Shown here: positions 5,712 through 59,813 of the stretch, one piece after another
Numbering within the stretch: position 1 is the stretch's first letter
Layout of the letters: each line of letters opens with the position of its first letter
NCBI GenBank assembly: GCA_004431415.1
Contig: QPMI01000200.1
Coordinates: 1-64,000, forward strand
Reading direction: 5' to 3'
Length of the DNA: 64,000 bases
Origin: Cyanophora paradoxa CCMP329
Lineage: Eukaryota > Plantae > Glaucophyta
The notes under the pieces: model-generated
Seen by the model: only the letters and a program-made list of their open reading frames with translations
Databases searched by the model: none
Told to the model about the DNA's origin: nothing
Program-made: the position numbers and the translations under genes

Positions 5712-5979
5712 TTAGCCCTCAGGCAAGCCCTTGTGCAAGGCCCACACAGGAAATGCTACATGAATGCTGTTTGAGGAATTTCCAACAGGCGAGCCCTCAG
5801 GCAAGCCCTTAGGCAAGGCCCGCACGCCTGCCTGATAGAGCAAAATTCATAGACATCGATTTCGGTTTCGGCCCCTTAGGGTTGCGATTTCGATCTCGAC
5901 GTCGATTTGCCTATCCGACTGAGCCCTTGGAATCGATCGGCGAGAACAGCTATTCGTCGTTGGTCGCGTCTGAAATGCA
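5712..5979 (+). repeat. Dispersed repeat family B, telomere-adjacent copy
   Basis: Shares gcctgcctgatagagc...cgacgtcgatttgcctatccga.gagccc.tgga...gaacagcta...tctgaaatgca with copies at 24.7, 47.7 and 59.7 kb. Preceded by a short direct duplication gccctcaggcaagccctt..gcaaggccc. Confidence 0.8.
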
Positions 5980-6574: not shown

Positions 6575-8427
6575 ATGCCGAGCGCCTTCGTCTCCGGCCT
6601 GCCCGGCCGCTCAGCAGCAGCTGTCAGTCTGCAGGCTCCCGGCATCGCTCACGTGGCGCTTGCGGTGCGGCCATCGCGAGATCGACCTGCGATCGTAGAG
6701 CTTGACCGGCAGTTCCTGGGCTCCAGCCTCCGTCGGCCGTCCACGCAGTTCGTTGGCCGCATAAAGCGTCCTGAGCGCCTGGTAGATGTCGCGCCAGCTC
6801 CGCCACCTGCTTCGCCCCATGCCTCAGCGGCCGTTCTCGTGGAAGAGGTCGCTGCACCCGTCGCGCCACCTCGGGCGCCGCGCGTGGCGCGAAAGGGTCT
6901 CTCTGAGGTGCCTAGGCATTCATTCATGCGAAGACGCGGCCCTGACAGCTCGCAGGATTCCGGTCGGCGCTACTTGCAAGAGATCGGCGAGATCTCGTTG
7001 TTGAAGGCAGAAGACGAGATTGAGCTGGCGAAGCGCATAGAAACGTTTAGAAAGCTGGAGAAGGTTAAAGAGCACATGAAGTGGAAGACGGGCGTCGAGC
7101 CGACAGACGAGGAATGGGCGCGGGTGCGATCTTTTCGCCCGCGAGAAGCGAAACGCACGCAAGGCTAACGAGTACGTCTTTCTGTGCGGCCTCGCAGGCT
7201 GCAGCGCTGAGCGATGCGGAGGAGCTCCGGCACATGGTGCGCGTGGGAACGCTTGCGCGCGACCGGCTCGTGCGCGCGAATCTGCGCTGGGTGGTTGCTG
7301 TAGCGAAGAAGTACCACAAGCGTGCGATCCTTTGCATCTTGCCATCCGTCGCGCATGATGTTGATCTTTGCGCAGAGCGCGGCACGATGAGCATGCAGGA
7401 TCTGATCCAGGAGGTAGCTGATTTGCTGCGCGCTCGTGGTGCGCACGCATGCCAGCCAACGGACCGCGCAGGGCAACATTGGTCTCATCCGAGCCGTGGA
7501 GAAGTTCGATCCGCGTATGGGCTACCGATTCACAACATGTGCGTGCCGAGTCGACCTTTTTGGCTTTTATGGAAGCATCATCACACTTTCGCAGATGCGA
7601 CTTGGTGGATTCGACAGGCAATCACGCGGAGCATTCAGAATTCCTCTCGAGAGATTCGACTTCCGGCACACAGGCATGAGAAGATCAACCGCATCAAACG
7701 TGCAACTGTCGCGCTCTCCAGGGTTCGATATTCTGAAGGGAGTGATATGGTGCTTGTTCTCACAGTGCTGCAGTCGTTGGGACGCCAGCCGACGGAGGCC
7801 GAGATTGCTGAGCACGTTGGCTTGGATCCGTCGCGCATGCGCAAGTTCGTTGAAAGTGCTGGTGCGATATTTAGGGTTCATAAATTGATTCGATGAGGTA
7901 AGTGATCACTGTTCGCAGCAGCTGTGGCTACCGTGTCCCTGGATGTGCCTATTAATGAGTCTGATAATCAAAGCGCCACCATCGGAGATTTCATTCGCTC
8001 GGAGAATGAAGGCCCTGCTGACCGAGTACGCCCGCCTTTTTCCTTCGTGCACGCCGTGCCCTATCTGAAGATCATGCAGGCTGAGCGCGAGTTGATGCGG
8101 GAAAGCGTCGCCCGCACTTTAGCCAAGGCCCTGTCTGAGCGGGAGTACATGGTCCTCCGCATGCGCTTTGGTCTCGATGATGGAGAGCCGAAAACTCTCA
8201 ACCAGGTGCCACTTTTGCCCCGTGTGGCCTCTATTTTCTGTTTGAATTTTCCGTAGGTCGGAGAGACACTTGGAGTGACCCGCGAGCGTGTGCGTCAGAT
8301 CGAGATGAAGGTTTGGAAGTTCGTGATCTCTCTGTGCAGTACTGCGGCTGATGTCAAAGTCCAGGCACTGCGAAAGCTTCGTCGGCCAGGATTCAGCTCA
8401 GCTCTCCGGGACCTGAGTTCCGATTAG
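6575..8427 (+). CDS. Nuclear-encoded, plastid-targeted sigma-70 family (RpoD-like) RNA polymerase sigma factor, multi-exon
   Basis: Transit peptide MPSAFVSG. Region 1.2 RYLQEIGEISLLKAEDEIELAKRI. Region 2 LVRANLRWVVAVAKKY, DLIQEGNIGLIRAVEKFDP, ATWWIRQAITRSI. Region 4 [33 protein letters not shown]. Stop TAG at 8425-8427. Confidence 0.93.
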
Positions 8428-13161: not shown

Positions 13162-14035
13162 TGCGTTCAGCGTAGACAGAGCTAGCTAGCTGTGTACTAC
13201 GCCTGTCTGGGCTACGCATAGGAAGGTGCGGCCCTCGCCGTTGCCGGCCCGGCCGTTCCCCCCCGAGGCCCGAAAGGGCTCCACCCCCGCACGGCCTAGG
13301 CCGCGCGCGTGTCGTGCGCAGCATCGCGTCGTCGTTCTTGGGCGGTGGGAGTGGTGGTGGAGGGCGAGGGTGGAACTGGGAAAACACCTTTTCGATGCTG
13401 GACGGAATGTGGCCGCGAAACCAGTCTTGACCTGGTTCAACTTTCTTCCAATTGCACGGCATGGTATGCATACTTTCGTCCAACTTTCGTCCAATTTCGT
13501 CCAGCCCGCGTGGTGATTCAGCGTCTCATGTAGCTGGTTCAGCTTTCACCCTTTTTCACTTTGCAAGCTTAAGTTGATCATGGTACCCGGTGACCAGTTT
13601 GTGAAGATCTGGAGTCAGAGTCGGACTTTTGATTTGATTTGGGCTTATGATCGATATCCCCGTCCGACGGTCTGAGAGGGCCGGGATTCACCTTCAACGT
13701 TAACGACCCTTTTGGGGGCTAAGACGTTGTAATCGTAATCGTAATCGCAGATCAAGGACGCCCTCAGGCCTAGCTAATCGACTTCGGTTTCGGTAGTAGC
13801 CGATATCCGGATCCGCCGCGATCCGGACCGGCTATGCATTGCAGCCCGCGTGGTGATTTAGCGTCTCTTTACGGCCAATCTTAACGAGCATCACGGTATT
13901 CGGCTAGCTTTCCGGATCCGGATCCGGCAAGCTAGCATCAATCAAAAAGACGCCCGACCCCTAATCGTTATCGTAGACGTTATCGCGCAATAAGACGTGC
14001 GACCCCGGGCCGGACAGGGCCGTATCGTAATCGTA
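13162..14035. mobile_element. Non-autonomous repeat family A, copy A1 (internally deleted)
   Basis: Starts tgcgttcagcgtagacagagctagctagct. GC-rich body to about 13353, then (ctttcgtccaa)n at about 13435-13503 and taatcgtaatcgcagatcaaggacgcc modules, as in A3 and A4. Confidence 0.8.
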
Positions 14036-14219: not shown

Positions 14220-14933
14220 TTACAGAATGTACTGGAGGAGGAGGTACGCGAAGCCAACAGAGCCCGCGCCGCCGATGAGCCAGCCGCTCACGAAGTCAGA
14301 CCAGCCCTCGCCGGACTCCCAGAGGGTGGCGTCCTTCGACTTCGAGGAGCCAGAGAAGTTCGCCTTGCCGTACAGAGCGAGGCAGGCGGTGAGGATGACG
14401 ACGAGGCCGACGGCCGAGAGCGAGCCGTAGAGGATGCCGCCGTCGGTGTTGCGAAGGGGGCCGAGCTCAACGAACGGGCCGGTGAGGAAGTAGCTGCGCG
14501 GTGTTGTTGAGCAAGAGCGAGCGGAGGCGCAAAAGGAAACCGGCGGCGCACCCGTGAGCCATGCCGATCTCGAGGCCGCGGAGGCGGGGGGTGAGGCCCT
14601 TGCGGTACGCGGGCAGGTTGGCCAGGAGGCCGTTGACGGCGGAGGAGTTGGAGATGGGGGTGGAGAGGTGGCCAATGAAAGCGTCATCGTAGAAGGGCTG
14701 CCCAGAAAGATCAGCGGGCGGCAAAACGAGCGGTGGTTTAACGCGCAACGGACCTTCACGGCGTCCTTAGCCATGCGCATGGTGCTGGCATTCTGGACGT
14801 CGAACGAACGGCGGGCACCGACGATGGCGCGGGCGTTCTTGGTCGCGGCCGGGATCTTCACCGACTTCGCGGCGGTCGCGGGCACGATGGCACCGGTCGA
14901 GGGAACCGCGGGGATGGCAGTGATGAACGCCAT
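14220..14933 (-). CDS. psaL: Photosystem I reaction centre subunit XI (PsaL), nuclear-encoded with transit peptide, 2 introns
   Basis: Transit peptide [10 protein letters not shown]. Mature part has [70 protein letters not shown]. Confidence 0.97.
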
Positions 14934-15638
14934 TTTTTGTCGGTGCGAACTGAGGTGTGGTACGAACTTGGTGCCCGGACTAACCTCTATCAAGGATATC
15001 ACGGCTCTGATTGCCACCCGTACCCTCCTTTGAGGTTGAGGGGGGGTAGCTGGCGCTGCCGCAAGCCTCCGGGAGCGTCGACCGGCATACGTACGCGTCG
15101 ACCACGTCGGGATCGGTTGGAGCTATAGTACAGCAAGCGCTCGCGCGCGCCGCGGCGCGCCCTGTCTGCAGCTGTCTGAGCTCGAGCTCGCGTCTGACGC
15201 GTAGACGCTCGTCTTCGCCTTCTCATTTGTGTTCTTCAACAAATCGGCGGAGGACTTCAACATCGACGGCCTGGTCGCGTGTTTCGCAAATCTTTTCAAT
15301 TGCAAGTTTGGTCGCTTATGTTCCGAAGTTCACCTCGCCGAGAGTCGCGAGCCTGAAAAGCTTGGTGGCTGCGATTCGAAGCGCCCCGCGCCGCCCTGCT
15401 CGTTTTCGCCTTCTAATTGGTATTCTTCAAGGCTTCCTCTTCCCCTCCCGTGGCGTTGGCGCACCGTCCCGCCTGGCGGCCTGCCCCCTCTTGGCCGTGA
15501 CATCAATCAAGAGGGCCGCAGCAGGATCGGAGGTGCTGCCCCACCAGGAAGCGACGGATGTGTGCGACGTCCGCCTTCAAGGCTGGCAGAGGATCAACCC
15601 TATCGACCCCTGCATGGATCATAGCCCCGGCCCTGGTT

Positions 15639-15788
15639 TGCGTTCAGCGTAGAACGAGCTAGCTAGCTGTGTACTACGCCTGTCTGGGCTACGCATAGGA
15701 AGGTGCGGCCCTCGCCGTTGCTGGCCCGGCCGTTCCCCCCCGAGGCCCGTAAGGGGAGTAACGCTCCACCCCCGCACGGCCTAGGCCG
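15639..15788. mobile_element. Repeat family A, copy A2 (truncated after 150 bp, followed by captured gene fragments)
   Basis: Same fixed end tgcgttcagcgtag as the other copies. Similarity stops at ctaggccg (15788). Confidence 0.85.
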
Positions 15789-19056: not shown

Positions 19057-19640
19057 TCCTGTTGCAATATTAATTGGGAAGTCAACAATACAATATTCCT
19101 GTTGCAATATTAATTGGGAAGTCAACAATACATGTACATGTGTATCATAGTGTATGTATACGTACATGTATATACGCGTACGTATACGTACGTATACGTA
19201 CGTATATACGTATATACGTATACGTATACACGCGTACTACCGTAGTAGTACTTGAGGAGGTACTATAGCTATAGCTACGGTACTTGCAATTGTCATCGAT
19301 ATCAGGATCCCGGATTGTCCGCGACCAGGCCCATGCCACTATATATATATAGCTATAGCTATAGCTAGCGCTAGCTGCACGGAGCCTCGGAGATCGGGAT
19401 CCCGGAAGTCTGAGCCCTTGACAGCTGCACATGCAGGCCTAGGAGGCGTCATGATCATAGCTATAGCTAACTCGATAAACTAAAAAGTTAGTTTAAATTG
19501 TGTCCCGGAGTCCACTGAGTCCAAATGCTCACTGAGTCAGTGCTGAATCGATATCAGACGCTGGTGTTGCGTCGCGCGAACACTAGCTAGCGCTACGTAT
19601 GCATATATATACATGTATAGACAGTATACTTAGTAGCTTG
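19057..19640. repeat. 40-bp tandem duplication plus palindromic hexamer microsatellites ((tacgta)n, (tagcta)n)
   Basis: tcctgttgcaatattaattgggaagtcaacaataca occurs twice (19057, 19097). Runs of tac-gta-tac and tag-cta-tag at 19140-19375. Confidence 0.85.
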
Positions 19641-23640: not shown

Positions 23641-24240
23641 TGCGTTCAGCGTAGACAGAGCTAGCTAGCTGTGTACTACGCCTGTCTGGGCTACGCATAG
23701 GAAGGTGCGGCCCTCGCCGTTGCCGGCCCGGCCGTTGCCCCCCCCCCGAGGCCCGGAAGGGGAGTAACGCTCCACCCCCGCGACGGCTTAGGCCGCGCGA
23801 GTGTCGTGTGCAGCATCGCGTCGTCGTTCTTGGGCGGTGGGAGTTCCTGCAGGCCGGGCGGGGCCGGGACCCGTCGGTAGCCTGCGGGGGGGCGGCGCAC
23901 GCGGAGGGGGGTCAGATCGGAATTGAAGCGCCCTGAAATCGAAATCGAAATCGAAGGCGCGCACTAGTACTTGGGGAAAGACCATGAAGACCGCATGAAG
24001 ACCAACGCACGCGACTTTCCGAAGTTCGTCCAATTAATTGCAACTTTCGTCCAATTTTCGTCCAACTTTCGAATTCGTCCAATTGCATGGTACTTTCGTC
24101 CAACTTTCGTCCAACTTTCTTCCAATTGTATGGTACTTTCGTCCAACTTTCGTCCAACTTTCAAGTTTCGTCCAACCCCTGATCGTAATCGCAGATCAAG
24201 GACGTCCTAATCGTAATCGCAATCGCAGAAAGACGTCCTG
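23641..24240. mobile_element. Repeat family A, copy A3
   Basis: Fixed end at 23641, body to about 23975, (ctttcgtccaa)n array at about 24025-24176, then aatcgtaatcgcagatcaaggacg modules. Confidence 0.85.
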
Positions 24241-24666: not shown

Positions 24667-24853
24667 CACGCCTAGTCCGGTAGAGCAACAGAAGGCTTAG
24701 ATTTCGATTTCGACCCCGGGCCCCTCGGTTTCGATTTCGATTTCGACATCGATTTGCCTATCCGAGAGAGCCCATGGATTGCTCGGCGAATATAGCTAGT
24801 CCGAACAGCTACTGGGTTACTCAAGACATCGTGTGAGTCACATCTGAAATGCA
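24667..24853 (+). repeat. Repeat family B copy
   Basis: gatttcgacatcgatttgcctatccgagagagcccatggattgctc...gacatcgtgtgagtcacatctgaaatgca. Confidence 0.85.
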
Positions 24854-24918
24854 CCGTCGAATCTCGTCCAACCTAAAGGCGCCCACTAATATTCCTTGTG
24901 TTATGGCTATCCATGAAT

Positions 24919-27738: not shown

Positions 27739-28745
27739 TGCGTTCAGCGTAGACAGAGCTAGCTAGCTCTGTACTACGCCTGTCTGGGCTACGCATAGGA
27801 AGGTGCGGCCCTCACCGTTGCCGGCCCGGCCGTTGCCCCCCCGAGGCCCGTAAGGGGAGTAACGCTCCACCCCCGCACGGCCTAGGCCGCGCGCGTGTCG
27901 TGTGCAGCATCGCGTCGTCGTTCTTGGGCGGTGGGAGTTCCTGCAGGCCAGGCGGGGCCGGGACCCGTCGGTAGCCTGCGCTGCGGGTGGCGGCGCACGC
28001 GCGGAGGGGGGTCAGATCGAAATTGAAGCGCCCTGAATTCGAAATCGAAATCGAAATCAAAGGCGCGCACTCGGGGAAAGTGCGAAAGCGCGATCCCTCC
28101 CTGGTCGATTCTGCAGGTCGGCGGAAGCGCGCAGAAGGGGGTCGACGTCAGACAGCGCACGGGAAATCGGGGTTAAGACAGCGCGGCGGGGCGGGCACCC
28201 AGGGGTTCCAATCGATATCCACGCTCCGCGAGGGTAGATTGACGGGCCTCCCAGTGCGAGTGCCTGCACGCGCAGGGTTAAAAATTTACCCGAGGGCACC
28301 CCAACACGGGCGGCGCGCTGGTTCGGCGCGGACTTGCAGCTGGGCGCGCTCGGCCTCGTCGACGTCGGGGAGAAAGTCCAACTTTCGTCCAACTTTCGTC
28401 CAATTTCCGTCCAACTGGTACTTTCGTCCAACTTTCGTCCAACTTTCAGTTTTCGTCGACCGTCGGACGTCCAACCCGTGATCGTAATCGATATCGATAT
28501 CGCAGATCAAGGGAACGCGTACGCGTATACGTACGCCCACTAGCTAATCGTAATCGCAGATCAACAATTGCAAAGCTAAGACGCCCTAATTACGATCGTA
28601 TACGTAATCGCAGATCAAGGACGCCCCAATCGTAATCGCAGATCAAAGCTAAGACGCCCTAATTACGAAGAAGAAGAGTATGTATAAGACACGCCCAAGC
28701 CAGCCGTACGGGTAACGTTAACGAACGTTGATTCGTTAACGTTCG
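27739..28745. mobile_element. Repeat family A, copy A4 (longest, about 1 kb)
   Basis: Fixed end 28 bp after the upstream stop. Full GC-rich body shared with A6, (ctttcgtccaa)n at about 28377-28475, aatcgtaatcgcagatcaag modules, aacgttaacg. Confidence 0.87.
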
Positions 28746-28772: not shown

Positions 28773-30612
28773 ATGGGCCCGAAGCTTGACCCCAAGGACT
28801 TCATCTTCTCGAAGCAGAAGGGTCAGACCTTGATCAAGAAGCCCGGGAGCATCGATGGGTGTGCCGGCGCCGTGCGCGGCGCGCGCGTATCGTTGCATCC
28901 TTTGACCCCACCGAAGGCAGCAGTTCATCATCGAGGATCTCGAAGACTGCGAGGTCTACTTGTTGGACTGGTCGGCCCAGGTCTCCGTCGACTGCTGCAA
29001 AAACTGCCGCTTCTTCATTGGTCCGTCGGCGTCCCGCACGGCACCCACGACGCGTCCGACCGGCCCCCGTGCGCTCACAGGTCCTGTCGAGGGGTCCATC
29101 TTCTTCCGCAACTGCGACGACTGTGTCATAACCGTTGCATGGTCGGCCTTTCCAGACAAGCAGCCGCCCTTTTCTAATCCGTTGCCGTCACAGCGCTCAG
29201 TTCAGGACCAGGGAGTGCAACCGATGTACGTTGACCTTGTCGGGGTCGCGTGCCCCTACGGTTGACAGCTTTCTGAGCCGGCTGCGCAGGCGATGTCTTC
29301 CTCTTCGCGGGCACGGAGCCGGTCGTCGAGGCATCTTCGAGCATGCGATTTGCGCCATGGTGTGCTGTCTTTCGCGTGTTCGGTTGTTTGCTGCTAACGC
29401 CCACCCCTCGCAGGAACGGGGCTTACCCATGCGCGTCTGCGCACTTTGCCGCCGCAAAGCTGAACCCGGCCGACAACCGATACGCGGCCGTGTTCGACTT
29501 CAACAAAGACGACGACTCCATCCCCATGCCCCACTGGGCCCTGATGCCCGCGGATGAATTCAAGGTTCGACCCGCATCTAATCCGACGCTCGACCACTTC
29601 CTGACAGTTCTTAGCCTGCCGAAGTTCCCCTCGACGGCGAATTCGGTCCTGTTGAGAACCCTGTCTCCGAGGCGCCTGCGTCTGGCGCGCCTGCGGTGCG
29701 ATCCCCTCTTTTAGCTGTCGGCCCGTACTGAGCGAGTTTTCAGGCAACGAGCGCGGACGGCGGCATGATGAGCTTTGATCTTTCTATGTCGCAAGCGGAG
29801 GTGCCGTTCTGCGTGTCGCATTTCGTTTCGAAGCGCGAAATCCGAACCCCCTGCAGGCCGAGGCGATCCTTGCGGAGAGGGACGAGGTAGGGTCCTGTTG
29901 CTTTCCATTGCAAGATTCCACTGAATGATGTGTCGCCCCGCACAGGCTCCGAGCGTCTTCAATGCTCCAGCTGCTGCCAACCCGGTATTCCCCCCCCCCC
30001 CACACACACACACACACACACACACCCTTCTTGCGACCCCAGGGCTCACATTGCAGGCAGGCAGCACCAATCCCCCTTTCGTCGCCATCCTTCTCGAACT
30101 CTGTTCCCATGCCGCCCGTTCACACTGGCCCTGTGCGCCCCACCACCCTGGGTTCTGAGATGCTGTGCCCAACGAGCTCCTTGCAGACGGACAAGGACCG
30201 AGCGGAGGAGGCGGAGAAGGCTCAGCGCAGGTGATTGATACGCCCCGTTGTGCCGCCGCGAGTGCTCATGGTGTTGCAGGAACAAAGGCGAAGAAGAGCT
30301 TCGCAACGCGCGTGCCAGCTGGGAGGACAAGGCTGGCAAGCTCCGCGAGTCACACAAGTGCTTTTTTTTCCGCGATGTCTCTTTGCTCCCAACCGATGCC
30401 CCCATAGGAAGGCGGATCCTGGTCGTTTCGCATCGTACAGCTTTGTACCTCTGCCAAACAAGTGGGAATCTATTTGTGCCCTCATCGACAGTGTCGGTGC
30501 CTCTGGAAAGGCCAAGGAGGGCGAAAAATCGAAGGAAGTGGAGGGCAAGCGTGACGCCTCCCGCCTCCGCTCCCTCCTTCTGAGTCTCAAGCACAACCCG
30601 GCCCGCATCTAG
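28773..30612 (+). CDS. RP2: RP2/XRP2-like TBCC-domain protein with a C-terminal clathrin-light-chain-like domain
   Basis: MGPKLDPKDFIFSK..PGSIDGQQFIIEDLEDCEVYLLD..FIGPVEGSIFFRNC..QFRTREC (TBCC catalytic Arg). C-terminus NKWESICALID...RDASRLRSLLLSLKHNP. Confidence 0.85.
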
Positions 30613-30790
30613 TTAATTTTGAGTACTCAATCAGCATTTGGACAGCGCTGGAGCCTCAAATCAAATCGCAGTCCATTCTTGACTGGACAAATTCGTCGAT
30701 GCTAGAGTCATGACAAATTCGTCGATGCTAGATTTTGAGCTTACGAGCTTGAGATTTTCAAAACTGAAGTGGCCAGTGTGGGATGTTACC

Positions 30791-31188
30791 TGCGTTCAGC
30801 GTAGACAGAGCTAGCTAGCTGTGTACTACGCCTGTCTGGGCTACGTGTAGGAAGGTGCGGCCCTCGCCGTTGCCGGCCCGGCCGTTGCCCCCCGAGGCCC
30901 GTAAGGGGAGTAACGCTCCACCCCCGCACGGCCTAGGCCGCGCGCGTGTCGTGCGCAGCATCGCGTCGTCGTTCTTGGGCGGTGGGAGTTCCTGCAGGCC
31001 AGGCGGGGCCGGGACCCGTCGGTAGCCTGCGGGGCCGAGACAACGCACGCGCGGAGGGGGGTCAGATCGGAATTGAAGCGCACTGAAATCGAAATCGAAA
31101 TCGAAGGCGCGCACTCGGGGAAAGCGCGAAAGCGCGATCCCTCCCTGGTCGATTCTGCAGGTCGGCGGAAGCGCGCACGAGGGGGGTC
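30791..31188. mobile_element. Repeat family A, copy A5
   Basis: Fixed end tgcgttcagcg at 30791. Body truncated at about 31188 and fused to captured fragments. Confidence 0.87.
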
Positions 31189-31383
31189 AATCGAGGAGGC
31201 GCGCGCACTTCTTTTCGAAACAGACAAGTTGCTGGGCTCGGATACGGGGCGCACAATCCTTTTGCCGGTGACCAGCTTCTTCAGAAAGCTCGTTCTCAAC
31301 GGAGATCGTCCGAAGCGCACAGCCATGCGCTTCAGCGATTCCACAATGCCCTCGAAGACAACCTGCGCATGCATTAAGTGCCG
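31189..31383 (+). pseudogene. Captured fragments: intronless copy of the 27-kb gene plus an IF2 fragment (34082-34151)
   Basis: 31189-31314 corresponds to about 27452-27637 minus intron 27548-27607. 31314-31383 matches 34082-34151. Confidence 0.93.
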
Positions 31384-33207: not shown

Positions 33208-33813
33208 TGAGCAAGTGGACATCCTCAGAAACGGCCCCGGCGGGGGCGGGGGTGGGGGCTTTAGCTTTGATTTGGATCTGAGGCTGGGCTTTCGATTTGG
33301 ATCTTTGATTTTGACTCCACGCTCCTTCTCCCCATCCCCATCCCCCCCCTCTCTCCCCCCCCCCCCCCCCCCCATCCCCCCCACATCGATATCCCTGTCC
33401 CTGCTCGCCCCCCCCCCCCCCCCCCTCCCTCTGCCCCTTCCCGACCCTCCCCCTCTCCCCCTCGCTTGTGCTGCGTACACCCCGTTGATTTGCAATTGGA
33501 GACTCTCGAAAGTTGTGGTTTCAGGCGCTGGAGAGGCTTTCCAATTGATTGATTCAGGCGTTCAGGGGCCATCTGAATACTTCTTCTCTTGGCACGAGCA
33601 TTTGATTCTGAACGGTGGCGTGGTCTGATTCAGCTTGGGAGACATCAAGAGCTCCGCTTTCGAGCTGCCGCTTCCGCATACGACCACCCGCTGATTAGCT
33701 AAGCACTCTAATCAAAGTCCAACCCTCCCGTCAAACCTCCGGGATCCAACCTGAAATTGGGGATCCAATTACCTGAAATCCAACCTGAAATTGAATCGAA
33801 ATCAAAGACTACC

Positions 33814-36800
33814 CTAGGCTGAAGATGGGGCGGTGTTGGAGCCAATGACGCGGCTAGCATCAAGCTTCCGCCGTACAGGATTGAGGCGATAGCACTCGAT
33901 GATATCACCATTCTGTACAGAGGCTGTTAAAGAATGCATTTCAGTGGCAGGGGAGGGGCCTCAGACCTCCCAGGCAGTGAACTTGATGGTGGACATGCCG
34001 CACTCGAGACCCGTGTTGACCTCCTTGACATCATCCTAAGCACATGTGTCATGTGTGCGTGAGAGAGATGAGGGAAAAAACAGCGCACAGCCATGCGCTT
34101 TAGCGATTCCACAATGCCCTCGAAGACAACCTGCGCATGCATTAAGTGCCGCTGTGGAAAACTGCCCCTGGTGCAGCACCTTATCGTTGCGCAAAGTGCG
34201 GAAGTTCGCATTCCGTACAAGTTTGCCCTCCCGAACGAAGAGCCCAGCAATGACGCCCTTCGTGCCAAGCGGGAAGGTCGCCCGGACCTGCTGCGGTTCA
34301 AGACGTGGCAGCACAAAACACGGACAGGCGTGATGGCGTGCCTCGGCTTCTCCGACGTGCTCCTCAACATACTCGGGCTCGAGCATTCCCTCCATCGCTG
34401 CCTCGACTTCTTCCAGCAGCTGCGCTCGACCGCTCGTCCCAGTGCAACATGCGTATTCCGGACAGCAGACCTTGTAAATAATGGAGTACTCCCGGATGTC
34501 CACGTTAAGGCGCTCAGCCGCCTCGCGGGCATCGTTTCCGGTTGCCGCGTTGAACCCAATGATGACCGCCTCTGAAGCGCCAGCAAGGTCGACATCCGCC
34601 TTTGAGATCTGTCGCTCGGCTTCGCCATATGGTGCGCGAGGGAAGGGGAAGGGGGGGGGGGGGGGGGGGGGGGGGGGCGGGCCTGGCCGACGCCGGAGTA
34701 GATGAGGCGGAGGGAAACCTCATTTTGCGGAAGCTGAGAAAGGGAATGGGTGATAGCCTCGAGGGAGCCCTGCACATCCGTCTTAAGGATCAAATTCAGG
34801 TTCTTCAACTCCCCACTCTTCATGCGCTGTGCCATTCCGCTGAGGCTCATCCTGAAAAGCCACTGTCAGGCCACGCACGGTTGGTTCGAAATGGGAGCAA
34901 CGGACCTCTGGGCGAGAGCCATCTTCCGCTCCTTCTCCTCCTCGGCACGTCCCTCTGCCATCATTCGAGCCTCTTTCTCCGATGCAACAACCTGCAGTTC
35001 TCCGTGTCGGCATCACAGTAGTGGGCGAAACCTCCACCCTCTTCACCTCGAATTCCTCGCCAGCATTGGGAACGCCGTTCATGCCCCAGATCTCGACGGC
35101 AGAAGAGGGGCCCGCCGACTCGAGCCTCGCGCGGCCCTCGCCGATAAGCGCGCGGACCTGTTTGATTTTTAGGGGGCAGAGCTTAGGATAAAGCGTGCCA
35201 GGATCACCTTGCCGTAAATTGAGCCGCAGACGACTAGGTCGCCAACGCGAAGTGTGCCATTCTGCACGAGCAGCGACGCCACGGGACCAAGTTGCCGGTC
35301 GGAACGGGACTCCACGCAGGTACCCTGCGTCCGAGTCGGCCGACGTAGGGGAAAGGTTGTATTTTTTTTTGGGGGGGGGGGGGGGGGGGGAGGGGGTGGC
35401 AGAAAATGGGCAATGCACCTTCGCGGGGCGGTCAGGGTTGGCGTAGAGGTCTTCGACATCGGTGAGCAGGACTATCAATTCCAGCAGCTGGAAGACGACT
35501 CAGGCTATTGGATTGGGAACCGGACTCGCAAAGCCTTCCCACCTGGTCGATGCCCTCGCCCTTGAGAGCGGAGATTGGCACCATAGTCGTGTTGCCACCC
35601 CAATCCTCCGCGAGAAGATTGTACTCGCTGAGCTCTTGCTTGACACGGTCCAGGTTTGCTCCCTCCTTATCAATCTTGTTGATCGCCACGACGATGGGAA
35701 CACCAGCTGCCTGGAGAGAAATCAGGGACGCGAGCTCGCGGAATAGGTGGAGTCGAAGAGATGAACCTGTGCGTGCTTGAGGGCCTCAATCGTCTGCGGC
35801 CGTACGCCATCGTCCGCCGCGACGACCAAGATCGCCACGTCCGTCACCTGCTCCACGTTTAGTCTGCCGCGATTCCCCCTCGCTTCGACGTGTACTCCAT
35901 GGGCCGCACCTTGGCGCCGCGAGAACGCATAGCAGTGAAAGCCTCGTGGCCTGGGGTGTCGAGGAAAACTATCTGCTTCTCCTCCCCGCCGACAGTGACA
36001 TCCACTTGATACGCAGAGACGCCCTGTGTAATGCCGCCGGCCTCGCCCGCCGCAACCTTGGTCTTCCGAATGGCGTCCAGCAGTGTGGTCTTGCCGTGAT
36101 CGACATGCCCCATGACAGTTACGATTGGCGGCCGCCTCACCAGATTGTCCAGATCGCTAAAAAGGGTGTGTGAGCCCGACTGTGCGATACAACGGGCCTG
36201 ACCGTCGCACCTGTCATCGAGCATGGCCTCGTTCGCCTTGCCCAAAACAGCGGCCTCCTCCTCCTCAGGCTCCTCAACGGGAATCTGCGAGTGAGGTGTT
36301 AGGACACCCCTCGTTCCACGAAAACTAGCGACGGGAAAGAAAAAAAGAACCTCCAGGTCAGCAGCAACAGACTTGATGGTGTCGATGTCCATCGGCTGGT
36401 TCATCGAAACTCGCAGGCCCCGGAGCACCAGCTTTTTGATGATGTCCGTGACGGGGATCTGCGCAGAATTCTTAGGAAAGAAAACGGATCAGAAGCCACC
36501 GGAGAGGATCACCCCCATTGTATTGGCGAACTCCATCGGAGTCATCGAGCCTGAAATAACGAGCTTATCGGGCCGCTCGGGCTCCGCCTGCCTCTCCAGC
36601 CGACGCTCCCGCTTGGACAGCTGCCGCTTCTCGGACTTTGCTTTCGGCGCGGCCAGCTTCGCCGGCTTGGGTCCCGAGGGCTTCGGAGGGGCAACGCGAG
36701 CGAGAGCTGCTGCCGCGGACATCACAGCTGGCGCCTGGGTGATGCGGACGGGGGCCAAAGCGGAGAGAACACTGGCGTCTTCCTCCTCCTCGTCCAGCAG

Positions 36801-41922: not shown

Positions 41923-42699
41923 TCATCCCGTAAGATCTACAGACTTTCCCCACTGTATCCCAATCTTATTCAACCTGCCCTGTTGTGTGCCTTTAATTCA
42001 CGAATCGAAATTAAAGCACTGTGAAGCTTAGTTCACATGAATTCAGAATCGAATTTAAATTAGAGCACCTTAAAGTGCCAGTCAGGAGCGAGGGAGAGGC
42101 CTCATTCCTCAAGAGCGAGGGACAGGCCTACAGCTACTGATGGGGCACATTGGCCAGCTGAGCCAGCTGTAATGATGCACTCCGTAAAATTGCACATTGG
42201 ATGCACTGACAAACTTTTGAAACATCCAATTCCGCTCACCTAGGCCTAGGCACCTTGGGCCATGATTTCAAATTTATGATTCAATGATTGTATCGTACTA
42301 CGGTAGACTCTGGGACGGCAAGCACACTTCGGATCGGAGCTCTGGCATGGTTCCGAAGTTCTGCAGGCCATGGGCCATTGCCGAGTCACTGAGTCGCCGC
42401 ATGCGTGAGCAGGGCCGGGCCGGGTGGACGTCCTTCTGTGTCGCCCGTAATGTGCATTGCGCTCAGCGGCTAGGAATCATCAGCACCCTATCCTATGATC
42501 AGAGAATTGACTCCGAGGCTCAGTGAATTGATATCGCGATCGATATCAGAGACACAATTGCAAGAGCACATCATATGGCATTGCCAAGTTGTCTACTAGG
42601 CTAAGTCTCGGAGACTCCGAGAAAAAAACCTATATATATATAGCTATAGCTAGCCTTTTCAGATTGAGCAGAGCGCACTGATATGATCAATTTGATCAC

Positions 42700-43230
42700 A
42701 GTGATCAAGCTCATGATCACCTTGAATTTTTGACCCCGAGGCTCAGTGAGGGCCCCCGGCCCCAGGCTATTGCCAAGCCTTGAAGTTACCAACGGCGAAA
42801 CGCAGCAGGAGACGGCCGCGGCCGCTCATGCAGTGCCACGGTGATCAACTTGATCAAGCTCATGATCACCTTAATTTTTGACCGTCGGACTCCGAGGCTC
42901 AGTGAGGGCCCCCGCGGCCCGGCCCCGGGCTATTGCCAAGCCTTGAAGTTGCCAACGACGACACGCAGCAGGAGACGGCCGCGGCCGCTCATGCAGTGAT
43001 CAACTTGATCAAGCTCATGATCACCTTAATTTTTGACCGTCGGACTCCGAGGCTCAGTGAGGGCCCCCGCGGCCCGGCCCCGGGCCATTGCCAAGCCTTG
43101 AAGTTGCCAACGACGACACGCAGCAGGAGACGGCCGCGGCCGCTCATGCACTGATCAACTTGATCAATTGCAAGCTCATGATCACCTTAATTTTTGACCC
43201 CGAGGCTCAGTGAGGGCCCCCGGCCCCGGG
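42700..43230. repeat. Tandem repeat, unit about 150 bp, about 3.5 copies
   Basis: Unit tgatcaagctcatgatcacctt..tttttgac..ccgaggctcagtgagggcccc..attgccaagccttgaagtt..gcagcaggagacggccgcggccgctcatgca starts at about 42702, 42851, 43006 and 43161. Confidence 0.92.
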
Positions 43231-43557
43231 CGAAATCGCCTTCCCGCTCTGGTCGCTGCAGAGCTTTGAACGGCCCCGGACCACGGCGCTTGTTGTCCGA
43301 CGGTCAAGCACATCCTCGATGCTGATTGCCTTGTCGATGAGGTTGCGGTACTGTCGATCAAGCTTGTACCAGAGAACCGTTGAACTGCAGCTGACTTGAC
43401 TCGCCGGTGCAAGTCCGCAAGCTTGCTTTCGCTTGCGCCCACGATCTCCTTGAAACGATCATCTCGTGCGCCTGCGCGCGGTCGATACTGTTCTGGGAGC
43501 CTTGCCACAATTTTGTTCACGAAAACCTGCAATCCGATGATCGTGAGTTTTGATTCA
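43231..43557 (-). pseudogene. Captured exon fragment of the LMBR1-domain gene (56096-56397) with three 8-bp insertions
   Basis: Colinear with 56096-56397 except for three 8-bp insertions, one substitution and one extra T (by eye). Confidence 0.95.
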
Positions 43558-43905
43558 TTCCGGACCCCGGGGGCCCGCGCAGTGTCAGCTGGCCCAGTGG
43601 CGGCCCAGCTGGCCAGTACTAGTGTGGATCATGCCATGATGAAGAGAGCGCTGGAAATTAAACGAATCGAAGAATTTCAGTTACAAAATCATTGAATCTT
43701 CTCGAGGAAACAAGCCTACGCGTACGCATCCATGCTTGAAAGTGCTTCAAGTACATGCGCATGGCCATATATATGCATGGGCGGCTGCAGCTGCAGCTGC
43801 CGCAGCTGCAGTGCGTCTGACATCGCATTTTTTTCTGACCCCATTTCTCCCCCCCGCCTCTCCGATTTAAAAAAGCGAGCGAGGAATCGCCGAGGATCCC
43901 GGAGG

Positions 43906-47311: not shown

Positions 47312-47686
47312 GCCGTCTTTTCGGCGTATGAACTGCACGGCGTGCGGGACCTGCACCGACGCCGTCCAGGTGCCGACCCGACACTGTGCCCCCGCCCGCT
47401 GCTGCGTCTCTCTCTCCCTCTCTGACGAGAGGCCTGGGGCGTCTAGAGCGGACTGGAGATGGAGCACGCGCCCCCGGTCCTGCTAAGGGGGTACTTAAGA
47501 CTTGATCATGAGTCGCCTGCGCGGGTCAACACGCTGTCACTGCGCAAGACGGCAGTCCACAGCTCCGATGTAGGCTAGCAGCTAGCTAGCTGCATCAAAG
47601 TGCGATGCAATCCTACGACACTGGTCCTCTTGGCACTTCCATTTTCAGTCATCCTGTTGAATTCCTCTCCCTGCCGCAGTGCTGGG

Positions 47687-47877
47687 CAAGGCACGCAAGC
47701 CTGCCTGGTAGAGCAATCATTGAATAGACTTTGATTTCGATTTCCGACTACTCGGTTTTGATTTCGATTTTGACGTCGATTTGCCTATCCGAGAGAGCCC
47801 ATGGATTGCTCAGCCTGGGTCCGAACAGCTACTGGGCTAGTCCAGATATCGTGTGAGTCGTACGGTATCTGAAATGC
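47687..47877 (+). repeat. Repeat family B copy
   Basis: gcctgcctggtagagc...gacgtcgatttgcctatccgagagagcccatggattgctc...agtccagatatcgtgtgagtc..tctgaaatgc. Confidence 0.85.
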
Positions 47878-54407: not shown

Positions 54408-57177
54408 TCATGGGCGTGGCAGCATCGTACTTGCGGGGTCCGTGCCTCTCATACCGACGACCTGGGGCGAGTCAAATGGGCAAAGGAGGGATAGAGGCTC
54501 GGACACCTGCAATAGCTTGTTTGATACTGAGCGAGCAATGTGCCTTGCACTCTCCATTACATTGTCATCCGGGTCTTCGGGTGCCACGGGCATCGGGACT
54601 GAAGCTCGGGGGTTGGATGCATCTGGATCGCCCAGATCACTGCGGCGCATGTTCTCAACGAGCTTGACGGTTGCTTCCGAGGCACGTGGCCTGACAGCCC
54701 ATGAAAACCTGCTGTTCCCTGCCAGAGGGCGCTCCTTCAACACTGGAGAGGCGCCGGTGGCCTCTACATCCAGGGCATCGGACGAAGCTCGTCTGGCGAT
54801 GACAAACGGGGCTGCAGCGAGATGCCCATCTGTGCTCGCAACGGAGGACTCGACTGATGGTGGCCCTGGAGGCCGAAGACCAGAGCTGGTGCCCGGATTG
54901 AAAGAGTTGTGCACAGGACTATAAGGAGGAGCAGAAACCATCGAGACCGCCTCCGTATCAGACGGTGGTGCTGGGGCTGGAATCCCAGCACCACCAGTTG
55001 GTGAAGCAAGACCAATCCCAGCAGCACCAACCTGATCACTAGGGCGCTTCACCTGGAGGGATGCATGAGCTAGGACAATCAAACATACAAATTCCATACG
55101 CAACGCGCTCACATAGAGCTTTTCTTGCGCTGCCCTAGCCTCGCGCCGCTGTCTTGCAGAGCGTACGATATCCCGACCACGGGACATGAGTTGTGCACTG
55201 TACTCCTCATCGACCTGTGTGGAATAAGCGCTTCACGCAAAATACGTTACAGCAAGTGGCACGCCTGCAAAAACTTCAGGCGGAGGTACTCCGAGAGCTT
55301 GCCGAAGGCGCCCAGGAAGGTGAGGAGTGCGGAGATGAGCACAATCGTACACACAAGATACGGAAGCCACGAGTTGAAAGCTGCAATCGCTTCGTCCATG
55401 GGCCGGAGAATAGCCTGCTCGATACAGATCGTGTTACGAGATGGAGCAACTAGAACGCCTTCAGCAGACCTGGTAAGCAGCTGTTTCTCGAGTGATGTTG
55501 AAAAGCGTGTAGAAGTGGAATGTGGATGCCGCAATCACCTAGAGTGGGCTGCGATGAGCACAGGAGACGAGAAGAAGAATACACAGCGCAAATTTGCCAA
55601 ACGACCTTCAGGGAGAGATACGCGTTCATGAGAAGCGACCAACCGTCCGAGTTCCCAGGTAGCAGGTCGTAAGTATTGAAAAACTGCAACTGCTATCAGA
55701 GCCCCGAAAGTGATGTGGAGTTCAACGTATGTAACAGACCTTCATCTTGAAGAGGCCGGCGTGGATGCAAAGGCACATGTAGCTCATGATGAAGATTGCA
55801 AGGAGCTGTGGATGGAGGTTACGATATACAATGACGGAACAGAAGAAGTCTTACGGACTTGCAAAGCGTAGGACGGCAGAGGCTTGGAAATAATCATGGA
55901 GAAGACAGAGATCCCAGCGAACGGCGTAGATGCCTCCGAGGCAAGCATGAGCAACGAGAGGCCCATAAAGAACACAGAGAGTATACGCGAGCCTGAATAA
56001 TCTTAAGGCCTGTGTGACGAATGTGCAGGGGGTTCACGAACCCACGGGTTTGATCCAGCAGCGCCACCACCATTCCATCTTGTCGAGGAAGAGACCGAAA
56101 TCGCCTTCCCGCTCTGGTCGCTGCAGAGCTTTGAACGGCCCCGGACCACGGCGCTTGTTGTCAAGCACATCCTCGATGCTGATTGCCTTGTCGATGAGGT
56201 TGCGGTACTGTCGATCAAGCTTGTACCAAAGAACTGCAGCTGACTTGACTCGCCGGTGCAAGTCCGCAAGCTTGCTTTCGCTTGCGCCCACGATCTCCTT
56301 GAAACGATCATCTCGTGCGCCTGCGCGCGGTCGATACTGTTCTGGGAGCCTTGCCACAATTTTGTTCACGAAAACCTGCAATCGTGAGTTTGATTCACTC
56401 AAGCACGTCGGACAAGCGAACCTGGAGGTTTTGATCGCGAGCCTCGAGAAGCTGTATGTACGCCGACAGCTCAGCAACCAGCTCTTCGAGATCCGAGTCT
56501 GCCTTGTTTAAATTCATTGAAGTGAGCATGACCTGCAGAGTGAAAGTTATGGAATGTGAGAATTCGCGCGCAACAAAGCTGGGCTGTACCTTGTACTCAA
56601 TGCGCTTCAGCCTTGTGCTAAGACTCCCATTGTACCAGAGAGACTTGGGGAAGTCAACAAGGCCATGGCCAAAGAGCACGACGACGAGCAAGAGGTTGAA
56701 GAGGTAGCTAAGCGCATAAATGAGGCCCATAAAGCGGTCGAGTGACATTCGGCCCGTGAAGAGGATCCAGAGGAAGAACGGCGCCAAGACAACAATGCCC
56801 CCGATAAGCCAGATCACGTTCTGTTTCAAAGCGTACATGCATCGCCCACGCCAGTTAAACTCCCCAGCCTGGATGTAATCCGTCATGAAGGAGATGATCC
56901 CTAGTTGGAGGACGATGACAGTCCAGTACACAATGAGCCACAAGGTCGTGAGAATTGTCGAGTTGGCGAGCTCATCGGGAGTAACCTGTGGGACCGCACG
57001 GCCGTCGATAACGCCCTGGAGGTCCACTGATGCGAATGCAACCGTGGAAAACGAAAAGAACCAGCTCGCCGCGACGACAGTGGCAAGATATGTAGGCAGC
57101 CGCGGCTCGCTGTAGTAGAACGTGAGGACACAGCATACGACCGCAACGACAACGATCTCAACAACGAGCTCGATCAT
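54408..57177 (-). CDS. LMBR1-domain membrane protein (LMBRD2-like), multi-exon
   Basis: Multi-TM N-terminus, WLIVYW, DYIQAGEFNWRGR..ALKQN, LFGHGLVDFPKSLW, LADLHRRVK, FNSWLPYL. The 3' end is approximate. Confidence 0.82.
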
Positions 57178-58384: not shown

Positions 58385-58953
58385 CGACCGCCCAGGTCCG
58401 CGCTGACCCAACGCGCCGCCTGCGTTGGAATGCCCTTGGGTCAACCCCGCGCGAGCAGGCGCTCGCACTGGGAGGCCCGCCAATCTACCCTCGCGGAGCG
58501 TGGATTGGACTCCGGGAACCCCTGGGTGCCCGGCCCGCCTCCGATTTCGCCTGCGCTGGCTGACCCCCCTCTGCACGCTTCCGCCGCCCTGCAGAATCGA
58601 CCAGGGAGGGATCGCGCTTTCGCGCTTTCCCTGAGTGCGCGCCTTCGATTTCGATTTCGATTTCAGGGCGCTTCAATTCCGATCTGACCCCCCTCCGCGT
58701 GCGCCGCCCCCCCGCAGGCTACCGACGGGTCCCGGCCCCGCCGGGCCTGCAGGAACTCCCACCGCCCAAGAACGACGACGCGATGCTGCACACGACACGT
58801 GCGCGGCCTAGGCCGTGCGGGGGTGGAGCGTTACTCCCCTTACGGGCCTCGGGGGGGAACGGCCGGGCCGGCAACGGCGAGGGCCGCACCTTCCTACGCG
58901 TAGCCCAGACAGGCGTAGTACACAGCTAGCTAGCTCGTTCTACGCTGAACGCA
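58385..58953. mobile_element. Repeat family A, copy A6 (inverted)
   Basis: Reverse complement of the A4 body, ending ...ctacgctgaacgca at 58953. Confidence 0.88.
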
Positions 58954-59368
58954 GGTAACATCCCACACTGGCCACTTCAGTTTTGAAAATCTCAAGCTCG
59001 TAAGCTCAAAATCTAGCATCGACGAATTTGTCATGACTCTAGCATCGACGAATTTGTCCAGTCAAGAATGGACTGCGATTTGATTTGAGGCTCCAGCGCT
59101 GTCCAAATGCTGATTGAGTACTCAAAATTAACTAGATGCGGGCCGGGTTGTGCTTGAGACTCAGAAGGAGGGAGCGGAGGCGGGAGGCGTCACGCTTGCC
59201 CTCCACTTCCTTCGATTTTTCGCCCTCCTTGGCCTTTCCAGAGGCACCGACACTGTCGATGAGGGCACAAATAGATTCCCACTTGTTTGGCAGAGGTACA
59301 AAGCTGTACGATGCGAAACGACCAGGATCCGCCTTCCTATGGGGGCATCGGTTGGGAGCAAAGAGACA
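58954..59368 (-). pseudogene. Inverted copy of the RP2 last exon plus 3' flank (30376-30790), attached to A6
   Basis: Near-identical reverse complement of 30376-30790, giving the same translated ...SLKHNPARI* ORF. Confidence 0.95.
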
Positions 59369-59696: not shown

Positions 59697-59797
59697 GACG
59701 TCGATTTGCCTATCCAAGAGAGCCCTTGGATTCCTCAGCGGACACTGCTAGTCAGAACAGCTAGTCCAGACATCGTGTGAGTTACATCTGAAATGCA
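59697..59797 (+). repeat. Repeat family B copy
   Basis: gacgtcgatttgcctatccaagagagcccttggatt...agtccagacatcgtgtgagttacatctgaaatgca. Confidence 0.85.
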
Positions 59798-59813
59798 CAT
59801 AACGGGTGATCTT

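Follow-up and report, generated by a model that had tools for sequence, protein, structure and literature searches.

Stereotyped 8-bp and 6-bp palindromic scars in intergenic DNA of Cyanophora paradoxa: probable excision footprints of a CACTA-like DNA transposon

The window analysed here, a stretch of 64,000 nucleotides from Cyanophora paradoxa CCMP329, begins with ~5.7 kb of CCCTAA telomere repeat (positions 1 to ~5689; TTAGGG-type, the C-rich strand being the one read, and a few variant units occurring towards the inner end), and therefore represents a chromosome end, with unique sequence starting at ~5690. Nuclear genes for plastid-type proteins lie near this end, with sigma-70 region 3, PsaL, and IF-2/EF-G-like domains encoded at 7081-7896, 14220-15017, and 33927-35478. 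The PsaL exon is 98% identical to C. paradoxa PsaL, the next best match being that of Cyanoptyche (45%). Part of the plastid-type IF-2 gene region is enclosed by a poly-C-rich tract (33332-33455) and a poly-G-rich tract (34638-34686), which lie ~1.2 kb apart on the same strand and form an imperfect inverted pair.

The window also contains an LMBR1-like gene and a second, non-functional copy of a fragment of it. The two copies (A and B), and the three short insertions, or scars, by which copy A differs from copy B, are as follows:

43231-43557, + strand: copy A, a non-functional copy of an LMBR1 gene fragment, defined by alignment, self-BLAST, and scar collapse.
43295-43305: scar 1, GTC-C-GAC-G-GTC, where copy B has one GTC; present in the Logan contigs of runs X1 and X5.
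43375-43385: scar 2, AAC-C-GTT-G-AAC, where copy B has one AAC; present in the Logan contigs of runs X1 and X5.
43532-43542: scar 3, ATC-C-GAT-G-ATC, where copy B has one ATC; located in the intron-derived part of the fragment.
56096-56397, - strand: copy B, the source within the LMBR1-like gene, defined by Pfam LMBR1 matches and translations.

The duplicated segment was originally described as an exon, and proves instead to be a gene fragment that crosses an intron-exon border. Matching the Pfam LMBR1 profile exon by exon places profile positions 3-208 in the ORF at 56395-57177, and positions 237-352 in the ORF at 56034-56477, the latter match extending up to the last residues of the ORF, with a predicted 46-nt intron of phase 0 (56376-56421, GT..AG) joining ...ARDQNLQ to VFVNKIV... 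in the product. Copy B comprises 280 nt of exon interior (56096-56375) and the last 22 nt of this predicted intron, and since the profile match runs below 56096, the duplication covers the exon only in part. A retrocopy of a splicing intermediate was considered as the origin of copy A, as one border seemed to lie at a splice site, and was rejected, with the LMBR1 profile match crossing that border and so placing it inside the exon. Copy A is a recent copy of the fragment, made at the DNA level. No record was found for the exact LMBR1 ORF, and an eIF3c-like ORF gave no match above 55% identity.

Pairwise alignment of 43131-43657 with 55996-56497 limits the homology to 43231-43557 of copy A (327 bp) and 56096-56397 of copy B, and the comparison of these two segments, which the original prediction had proposed, yields exactly three gaps of 8 bp, one mismatch, and one indel of 1 bp. 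At each 8-bp gap a triplet XYZ of copy B appears in copy A as XYZ-C-revcomp(XYZ)-G-XYZ. The sole mismatch lies at 43372 (G in A, A in B), 3 nt upstream of scar 2, and the 1-bp indel in a T run at 43548-43551; scripted removal of the exact motifs from the A/B pair leaves this mismatch and the 1-bp gap and nothing else, so that the earlier count of one substitution and one 1-bp indel stands. Copy B, with its intact open frame, represents the ancestral state, and the 8-bp events are thus insertions in copy A. The chance that a random 8-bp insertion obeys the rule is ~4^-8, and its observance by 3/3 insertions in copy A is therefore not a matter of chance.

The region is contained in 24 sequencing runs from a single organism. 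Logan contigs of runs X1 (2024) and X5 (2019), at most one of which can be the source sample of the assembly, match 43231-43534 exactly, including scars 1 and 2, and a 4301-letter contig spans scar 3 without gaps in 4/4 runs examined (X1, X5, X18, and X19, the last dating from 2012); contigs of this kind speak to presence only, and not to absence or rare alleles. Calls in X18 and X19 in which the 8 bp seemed to be left out were considered as polymorphism and rejected, being copy B aligned on copy A, as evident from the base at 43372 and from the sequence that continues beyond, both of which are those of B. The scars are no artefact of assembly. An origin of small palindromic insertions in assembly or long-read sequencing can appeal to palindromic artefacts known from some library preparations, though to nothing specific here, and is given next to no credence, with short-read contigs of the 2012, 2019, and 2024 runs holding the scars exactly, and with scars that tandem units have in common by inheritance and that decay by substitution.

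The form seen in copy A recurs across the window. In the 58.3 kb outside the telomere, exact XYZ-C-revcomp-G-XYZ motifs number 50, compared with 1.4 ± 1.2 in 200 dinucleotide-preserving shuffles (maximum 6), which, together with the alignment, upholds the claim of three 8-bp insertions made by one rule. The 15 other linker-letter pairs occur 0-3 times each, and the direct-copy control XYZ-C-XYZ-G-XYZ occurs once, against 1.3 expected. When the middle triplet is left free (XYZ-C-N3-G-XYZ), 162 occurrences are found compared with 80 expected (76 vs 78 for the G..C control), the excess being made up of the 50 exact motifs and 27 two-of-three reverse complements. The exact motifs represent 33 different triplets, and all 50 have a middle triplet that exactly reverse-complements the flank, a palindromic (P-type) flank copy at the junction. 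The motif form is its own reverse complement, reading C-then-G on either strand, and the C and G linkers of this 8-bp class are invariant and have no template in the flanks. No target-site motif was detected around the scars, and the alternative junction XYZ-CG-XYZ shows no specific enrichment (111 vs 78, with a GC control of 119 vs 90). Copies of the 8-bp motif that are one letter off are also in excess (81 vs 40 expected), which implies older, decayed scars and long-term accumulation, with a rough mean age of ~0.07 substitutions per site.

A spacer-less 6-bp form, XYZ-revcomp-XYZ, is likewise abundant, with 166 occurrences compared with 18 expected, corresponding to 112 non-dinucleotide loci. 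Versions with 4- and 5-nt arms are almost all tetramer or hexamer microsatellites of the (AGCT)n type, the arms of the scars being fixed at 3 nt. Palindromic hexamer arrays, (GTATAC)n, (CTATAG)n, and (ATCGAT)n, are found at 19150-19470, 28487-28533, and 42631-42652, and are what repeated 6-bp scars at one triplet would build; kb 19 alone accounts for 38 six-base motif hits.

The fixed dimensions of the scars bear on an origin in templated insertion, by polymerase-theta-type end joining or replication template switching, in which a 3' end snaps back, copies a few bases, and rejoins. Such snap-back copying is well known to leave short inverted insertions where breaks have been repaired, and could supply the spacer-less 6-bp form, which needs no foreign nucleotides. 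However, it would be expected to vary in length and template position, against the fixed 8 and 6 bp and 3-nt arms observed, and would leave the two invariant, untemplated nucleotides of the 8-bp class and the exact duplication of the triplet on both sides in every case to be accounted for; we judge templated insertion to be an improbable source of the scars.

The two linker bases are also coupled. If a base were gained or lost independently at each end, the counts of 8- and 6-bp scars would predict ~170 mixed 7-bp forms; the two mixed forms were found 15 and 11 times, with ~5 expected of each, and are no more enriched than other single-letter controls. In addition, the ratio of 8-bp to 6-bp loci varies by region (chi-square 24.9, df 7, p = 8e-4, with tandem-array copies inflating the kb 42-43 count). 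The scarcity of mixed forms and the regional variation together point to two classes of element, or to two modes of concerted cleavage, and not to noise at individual ends, and argue against untemplated addition of C at free ends. Among the single-linker controls, the greatest enrichment is that of the triplet-revcomp-C-triplet form and its mirror G form (23 and 10 vs ~5 expected). A 7-bp insertion of this type, CCG-CGG-C-CCG, is present at 42911-42917 and 43066-43072, being common to two tandem units, and could be a 6-bp scar with a slip in the C run.

Scars are clustered at kb 13, 15, 18-19, 24, 28, 42-43, and 57-59, in intergenic DNA, with gene bodies free of them. Stop-free stretches of at least 150 aa make up 49% of the DNA, yet hold 9/50 eight-base and 39/166 six-base scars. 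The densest patch surrounds copy A and includes a tandem array:

42200-43800: intergenic scar hot spot, containing copy A, the densest patch by motif counts.
42755-43199, + strand: tandem array of a 155-bp unit (2.8 copies by TRF), which partial units widen to 42676-43231.

Exact scars occupy 344 of the 1600 bp of the hot spot (~21%), with ~20 eight-base and ~17 six-base scar loci in kb 42-43; hot spots in general have one scar per 40-80 bp. The units of the array differ in the scars they carry, GTG-C-CAC-G-GTG being present in one unit, GAC-C-GTC-G-GAC in two, and CAA-TTG-CAA in one. Scars nest and iterate, with nested ones also found in the 155-bp units. At 42880-42900 and 43035-43055, overlapping GAC-C-GTC-G-GAC and CTC-C-GAG-G-CTC motifs share one base, the inner scar being present in 4/4 tandem units and the outer in 2/4, which orders the events relative to amplification of the array.

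This distribution is of consequence for the view, offered as one option in the original prediction, of a mutator acting on duplicated DNA, and for a repeat-directed, RIP-like mutator that would recognise duplicated DNA and disable the extra copy by frameshift insertions. In favour of the latter, 3/3 scars of the A/B pair fall within the redundant copy, and the functional gene is free of them; the lack of scars in copy B is, however, attributable to selection on its intact reading frame. Most scars lie in single-copy intergenic DNA, filling patches of it throughout the window, and young duplicates can be scar-free, as in an 814-bp repeat pair of 97.5% identity with 16 mismatches and no scars. 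Duplicated DNA is thus not the preferred substrate, and a RIP-like mutator is very improbable.

The proposal that insertions outnumber substitutions holds, on a small sample (3 of 4 events), for the hot spot in which copy A lies, and does not extend to the rest of the window. Scars and substitutions stand at 3 : 1 between copies A and B, and at ~4 events to 4-8 mismatches among the tandem units, whilst retroposon-like repeat pairs show 0-4 scars to 16-35 mismatches, the ratio outside the copy A hot spot being ~0.1-0.5. More broadly, the rate at which scars arise in non-coding DNA is of the same order as that of point substitution.

We consider that the three insertions in copy A were probably left by the excision of a cut-and-paste DNA transposon whose insertion duplicates 3 bp of target and whose termini are 5'-C...G-3', similar to those of CACTA/CMC elements; these footprints would have formed through flank hairpins and microhomology joining, and are local examples of the wider class of scars. 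The sequence shows the scars themselves, with their polarity, uniformity, excess, and distribution; from their form we infer the transposon, its flank hairpins, and a nick offset of 1 nt. Insertion at a triplet XYZ would give XYZ-[C...G]-XYZ. At excision, each strand would be nicked 1 nt inside the 5' end of the element, and the flank 3'-OH, ending in XYZ-C, would attack the opposite strand exactly at the border between element and flank, freeing the element and sealing each flank as a hairpin XYZ-C-Z'Y'X'. Opening of the hairpins at least 3 nt from the tip would leave two 3' tails, the left one ending in Z'Y'X' (top strand) and the right one in XYZ (bottom strand), and as each tail derives from one copy of the target duplication, the two would always be complementary. 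The tails would anneal over 3 nt, and filling of the gap opposite each C with G would produce XYZ-C-Z'Y'X'-G-XYZ, the product being uniform since the longest available microhomology would always be the same. The spacer-less 6-bp scar would arise by the same reaction from a flush nick, probably made by another element family or in another cleavage mode.

At 3/3 sites in copy A the triplet that occurs once in copy B flanks the insert, as a target duplication would, and both the empty state (copy B and some tandem units) and the footprint state are present in the window; no full site was seen there, nor any site with a full as well as a scar state. The hairpin-footprint reading made originally is partly supported, in that it fits the fixed arms, the paired C...G, the strand symmetry, the nesting, and the depletion of scars in coding DNA, the transposon itself being postulated from these features. 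Counting against a transposon is the density of scars in hot spots, which demands very many cycles of insertion and excision that leave few resident copies. To our knowledge, hairpin chemistry has never been demonstrated for the CMC superfamily. Biochemical work has demonstrated flank hairpins in the hAT, Transib/RAG, and MULE families (PMC5499845), CACTA elements are defined by duplications of 3 bp and by CACT(A/G) termini (PMC4423477, PMC6379663), and repair of mPing excision sites is steered by microhomology from the target duplication (PMC4561436). The C-then-G linkers would fit the CACT(A/G) ends of CACTA elements (PMC4423477), the comparison being with published ends.

Consistent with the earlier statement that no responsible element or enzyme is visible in the window, repeat, terminus, and Pfam searches of it returned no candidate, intact or partial. 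Exact inverted terminal repeats of 9 nt were accompanied by a 3-bp duplication in 40 of ~3000 pairs in the window, the 1-in-64 rate expected by chance; no duplication accompanied any CACT(A/G)...(C/T)AGTG pair with matching 20-mers; an inverted-repeat search of the window found poly-C/poly-G tracts and microsatellites only; and a Pfam search found no transposase domain in any of the 18 ORFs of at least 200 aa. A repeat family with members at 13162, 15639, 23641, 27739, 30791, and 58953 (minus strand) was rejected as the source element, with its one fixed end and variable truncation being retroposon-like and not of the terminal-inverted-repeat type, and two other small repeat families were rejected for want of terminal inverted repeats, the repeat families of the window looking either retroposon-like or fragmentary.

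Copies of the fixed-end family lie at 13162-13352, 15639-15788, 23641-23965, 27739-28333, 30376-31189 (fixed end 30791), and 58396-59368 (minus strand; fixed end 58953), and are 92-98% identical, with few scars and a stem-loop-like inverted repeat in the fixed end. The family resembles a retroposon of LINE/SINE type that is truncated at its 5' end and is seen here from the opposite strand. A short family of ~180 bp (5812-5943, 24679-24854, 47685-47877, and 59697-59798; 77-84% identity), which has no clear terminal inverted repeats, has copies that differ by scars, such as AAT-C-ATT-G-AAT at 47715.

The scars might instead be the work of a host or domesticated hairpin-forming nuclease, transposase-derived or RAG-like, which would cut open non-genic DNA with a 3-bp stagger and no inserted element, the ends being sealed as hairpins and the C supplied by a dC-adding activity. 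The want of an element in the window and of a detectable target motif would both follow from this, as would the extreme and patchy density of scars at 42.2-43.8 kb. However, untemplated C at two independent ends should yield many mixed 7-bp forms, none of which is specifically enriched, and the paired, invariant C...G matches the residue to be expected from element termini. A 3-bp stagger that duplicates the triplet bears the signature of integration, RAG/Transib elements make 5-bp duplications, and the regional variation in the 8:6 ratio is as expected for different element families. We regard such a nuclease as unlikely, and likewise its stronger version, a host-encoded system making intergenic DNA and palindromic microsatellites, in which a dedicated or domesticated hairpin nuclease would cut open, non-genic chromatin again and again, each time with a stagger of 3 bp. 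The paired C...G, the arms fixed at 3 nt, and the exact duplication of the triplet are better explained by excision of a transposon than by any rival.

If transposon excision is indeed the source, C. paradoxa would preserve, as in an archive, a great number of repair products of one and the same transposition reaction, and would offer a first detailed view of cutting by a CMC/CACTA-type transposase, with a nick 1 base inside the element, flank hairpins, and joining guided by the target duplication; we know of no biochemistry as yet for the excision cutting step in the CMC superfamily. Excision scars could then be a leading class of indel, arising at ~0.1 to 3 times the rate of point substitution in the non-coding DNA of the window, supplying up to a fifth of intergenic patches, seeding palindromic microsatellites, and frameshifting stray gene copies. 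For annotation, collapsing the scars restores the ancestral sequence, and aids the detection of repeats and paralogues in the C. paradoxa genome.

A full-text literature search found no published description of the scar, in Cyanophora or elsewhere, with the C. paradoxa genome paper (PMC6704402) and methylome paper (PMC12344493) mentioning DNA transposons or repeats and not footprints. Literature on footprints, hairpins, and CACTA elements yielded only the variable footprints of plants. A close likeness is to the footprints of CACTA/En-Spm/Tam1 (CMC) elements, which share with the scars a variable 3-bp target duplication and an empty site with inverted target bases, and whose element ends of C...G the linkers of the scars would match (PMC4423477 Table 1; PMC6379663). 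Published plant CACTA footprints are variable rather than uniform (PMC6379663, PMC4423477), with multiple variants even in single plants (PMC6379663). In contrast, one product dominates in Cyanophora, always retaining what would be one nucleotide of the putative element per side and a full 3-nt inverted copy, and the scars make up as much as ~1/5 of the DNA in intergenic patches.

A hairpin model for the excision of plant transposons goes back to Coen and colleagues in the 1980s. Hermes nicks 1 nt outside the element and RAG nicks flush, the nick suggested by the scars lying 1 nt inside. The proposed nick, flank hairpin, off-centre opening, and palindromic additions resemble those of hAT, Transib/RAG, and MULE elements and the P-nucleotides of V(D)J joining (PMC5499845), whereas those elements make 8-, 5-, or 9-bp duplications and leave diverse junctions. 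As in mPing (PIF/Harbinger), two copies of a 3-bp duplication would supply the microhomology for uniform repair (PMC4561436); mPing repair restores the original sequence, however, whilst here the microhomology would lie between inverted P-type extensions, giving a uniform gain of 6 or 8 bp. Polymerase-theta end joining also leaves short inverted copies of flanks at repaired breaks, using 2-4 nt of microhomology, and may perform the final joining step, but unlike the Cyanophora scars its products are not of one arm length and lack invariant foreign nucleotides. Compared with hairpin-type excision footprints described to date, the scars of C. paradoxa are new in being uniform, in falling into two discrete sizes, and in being abundant enough to shape intergenic DNA.
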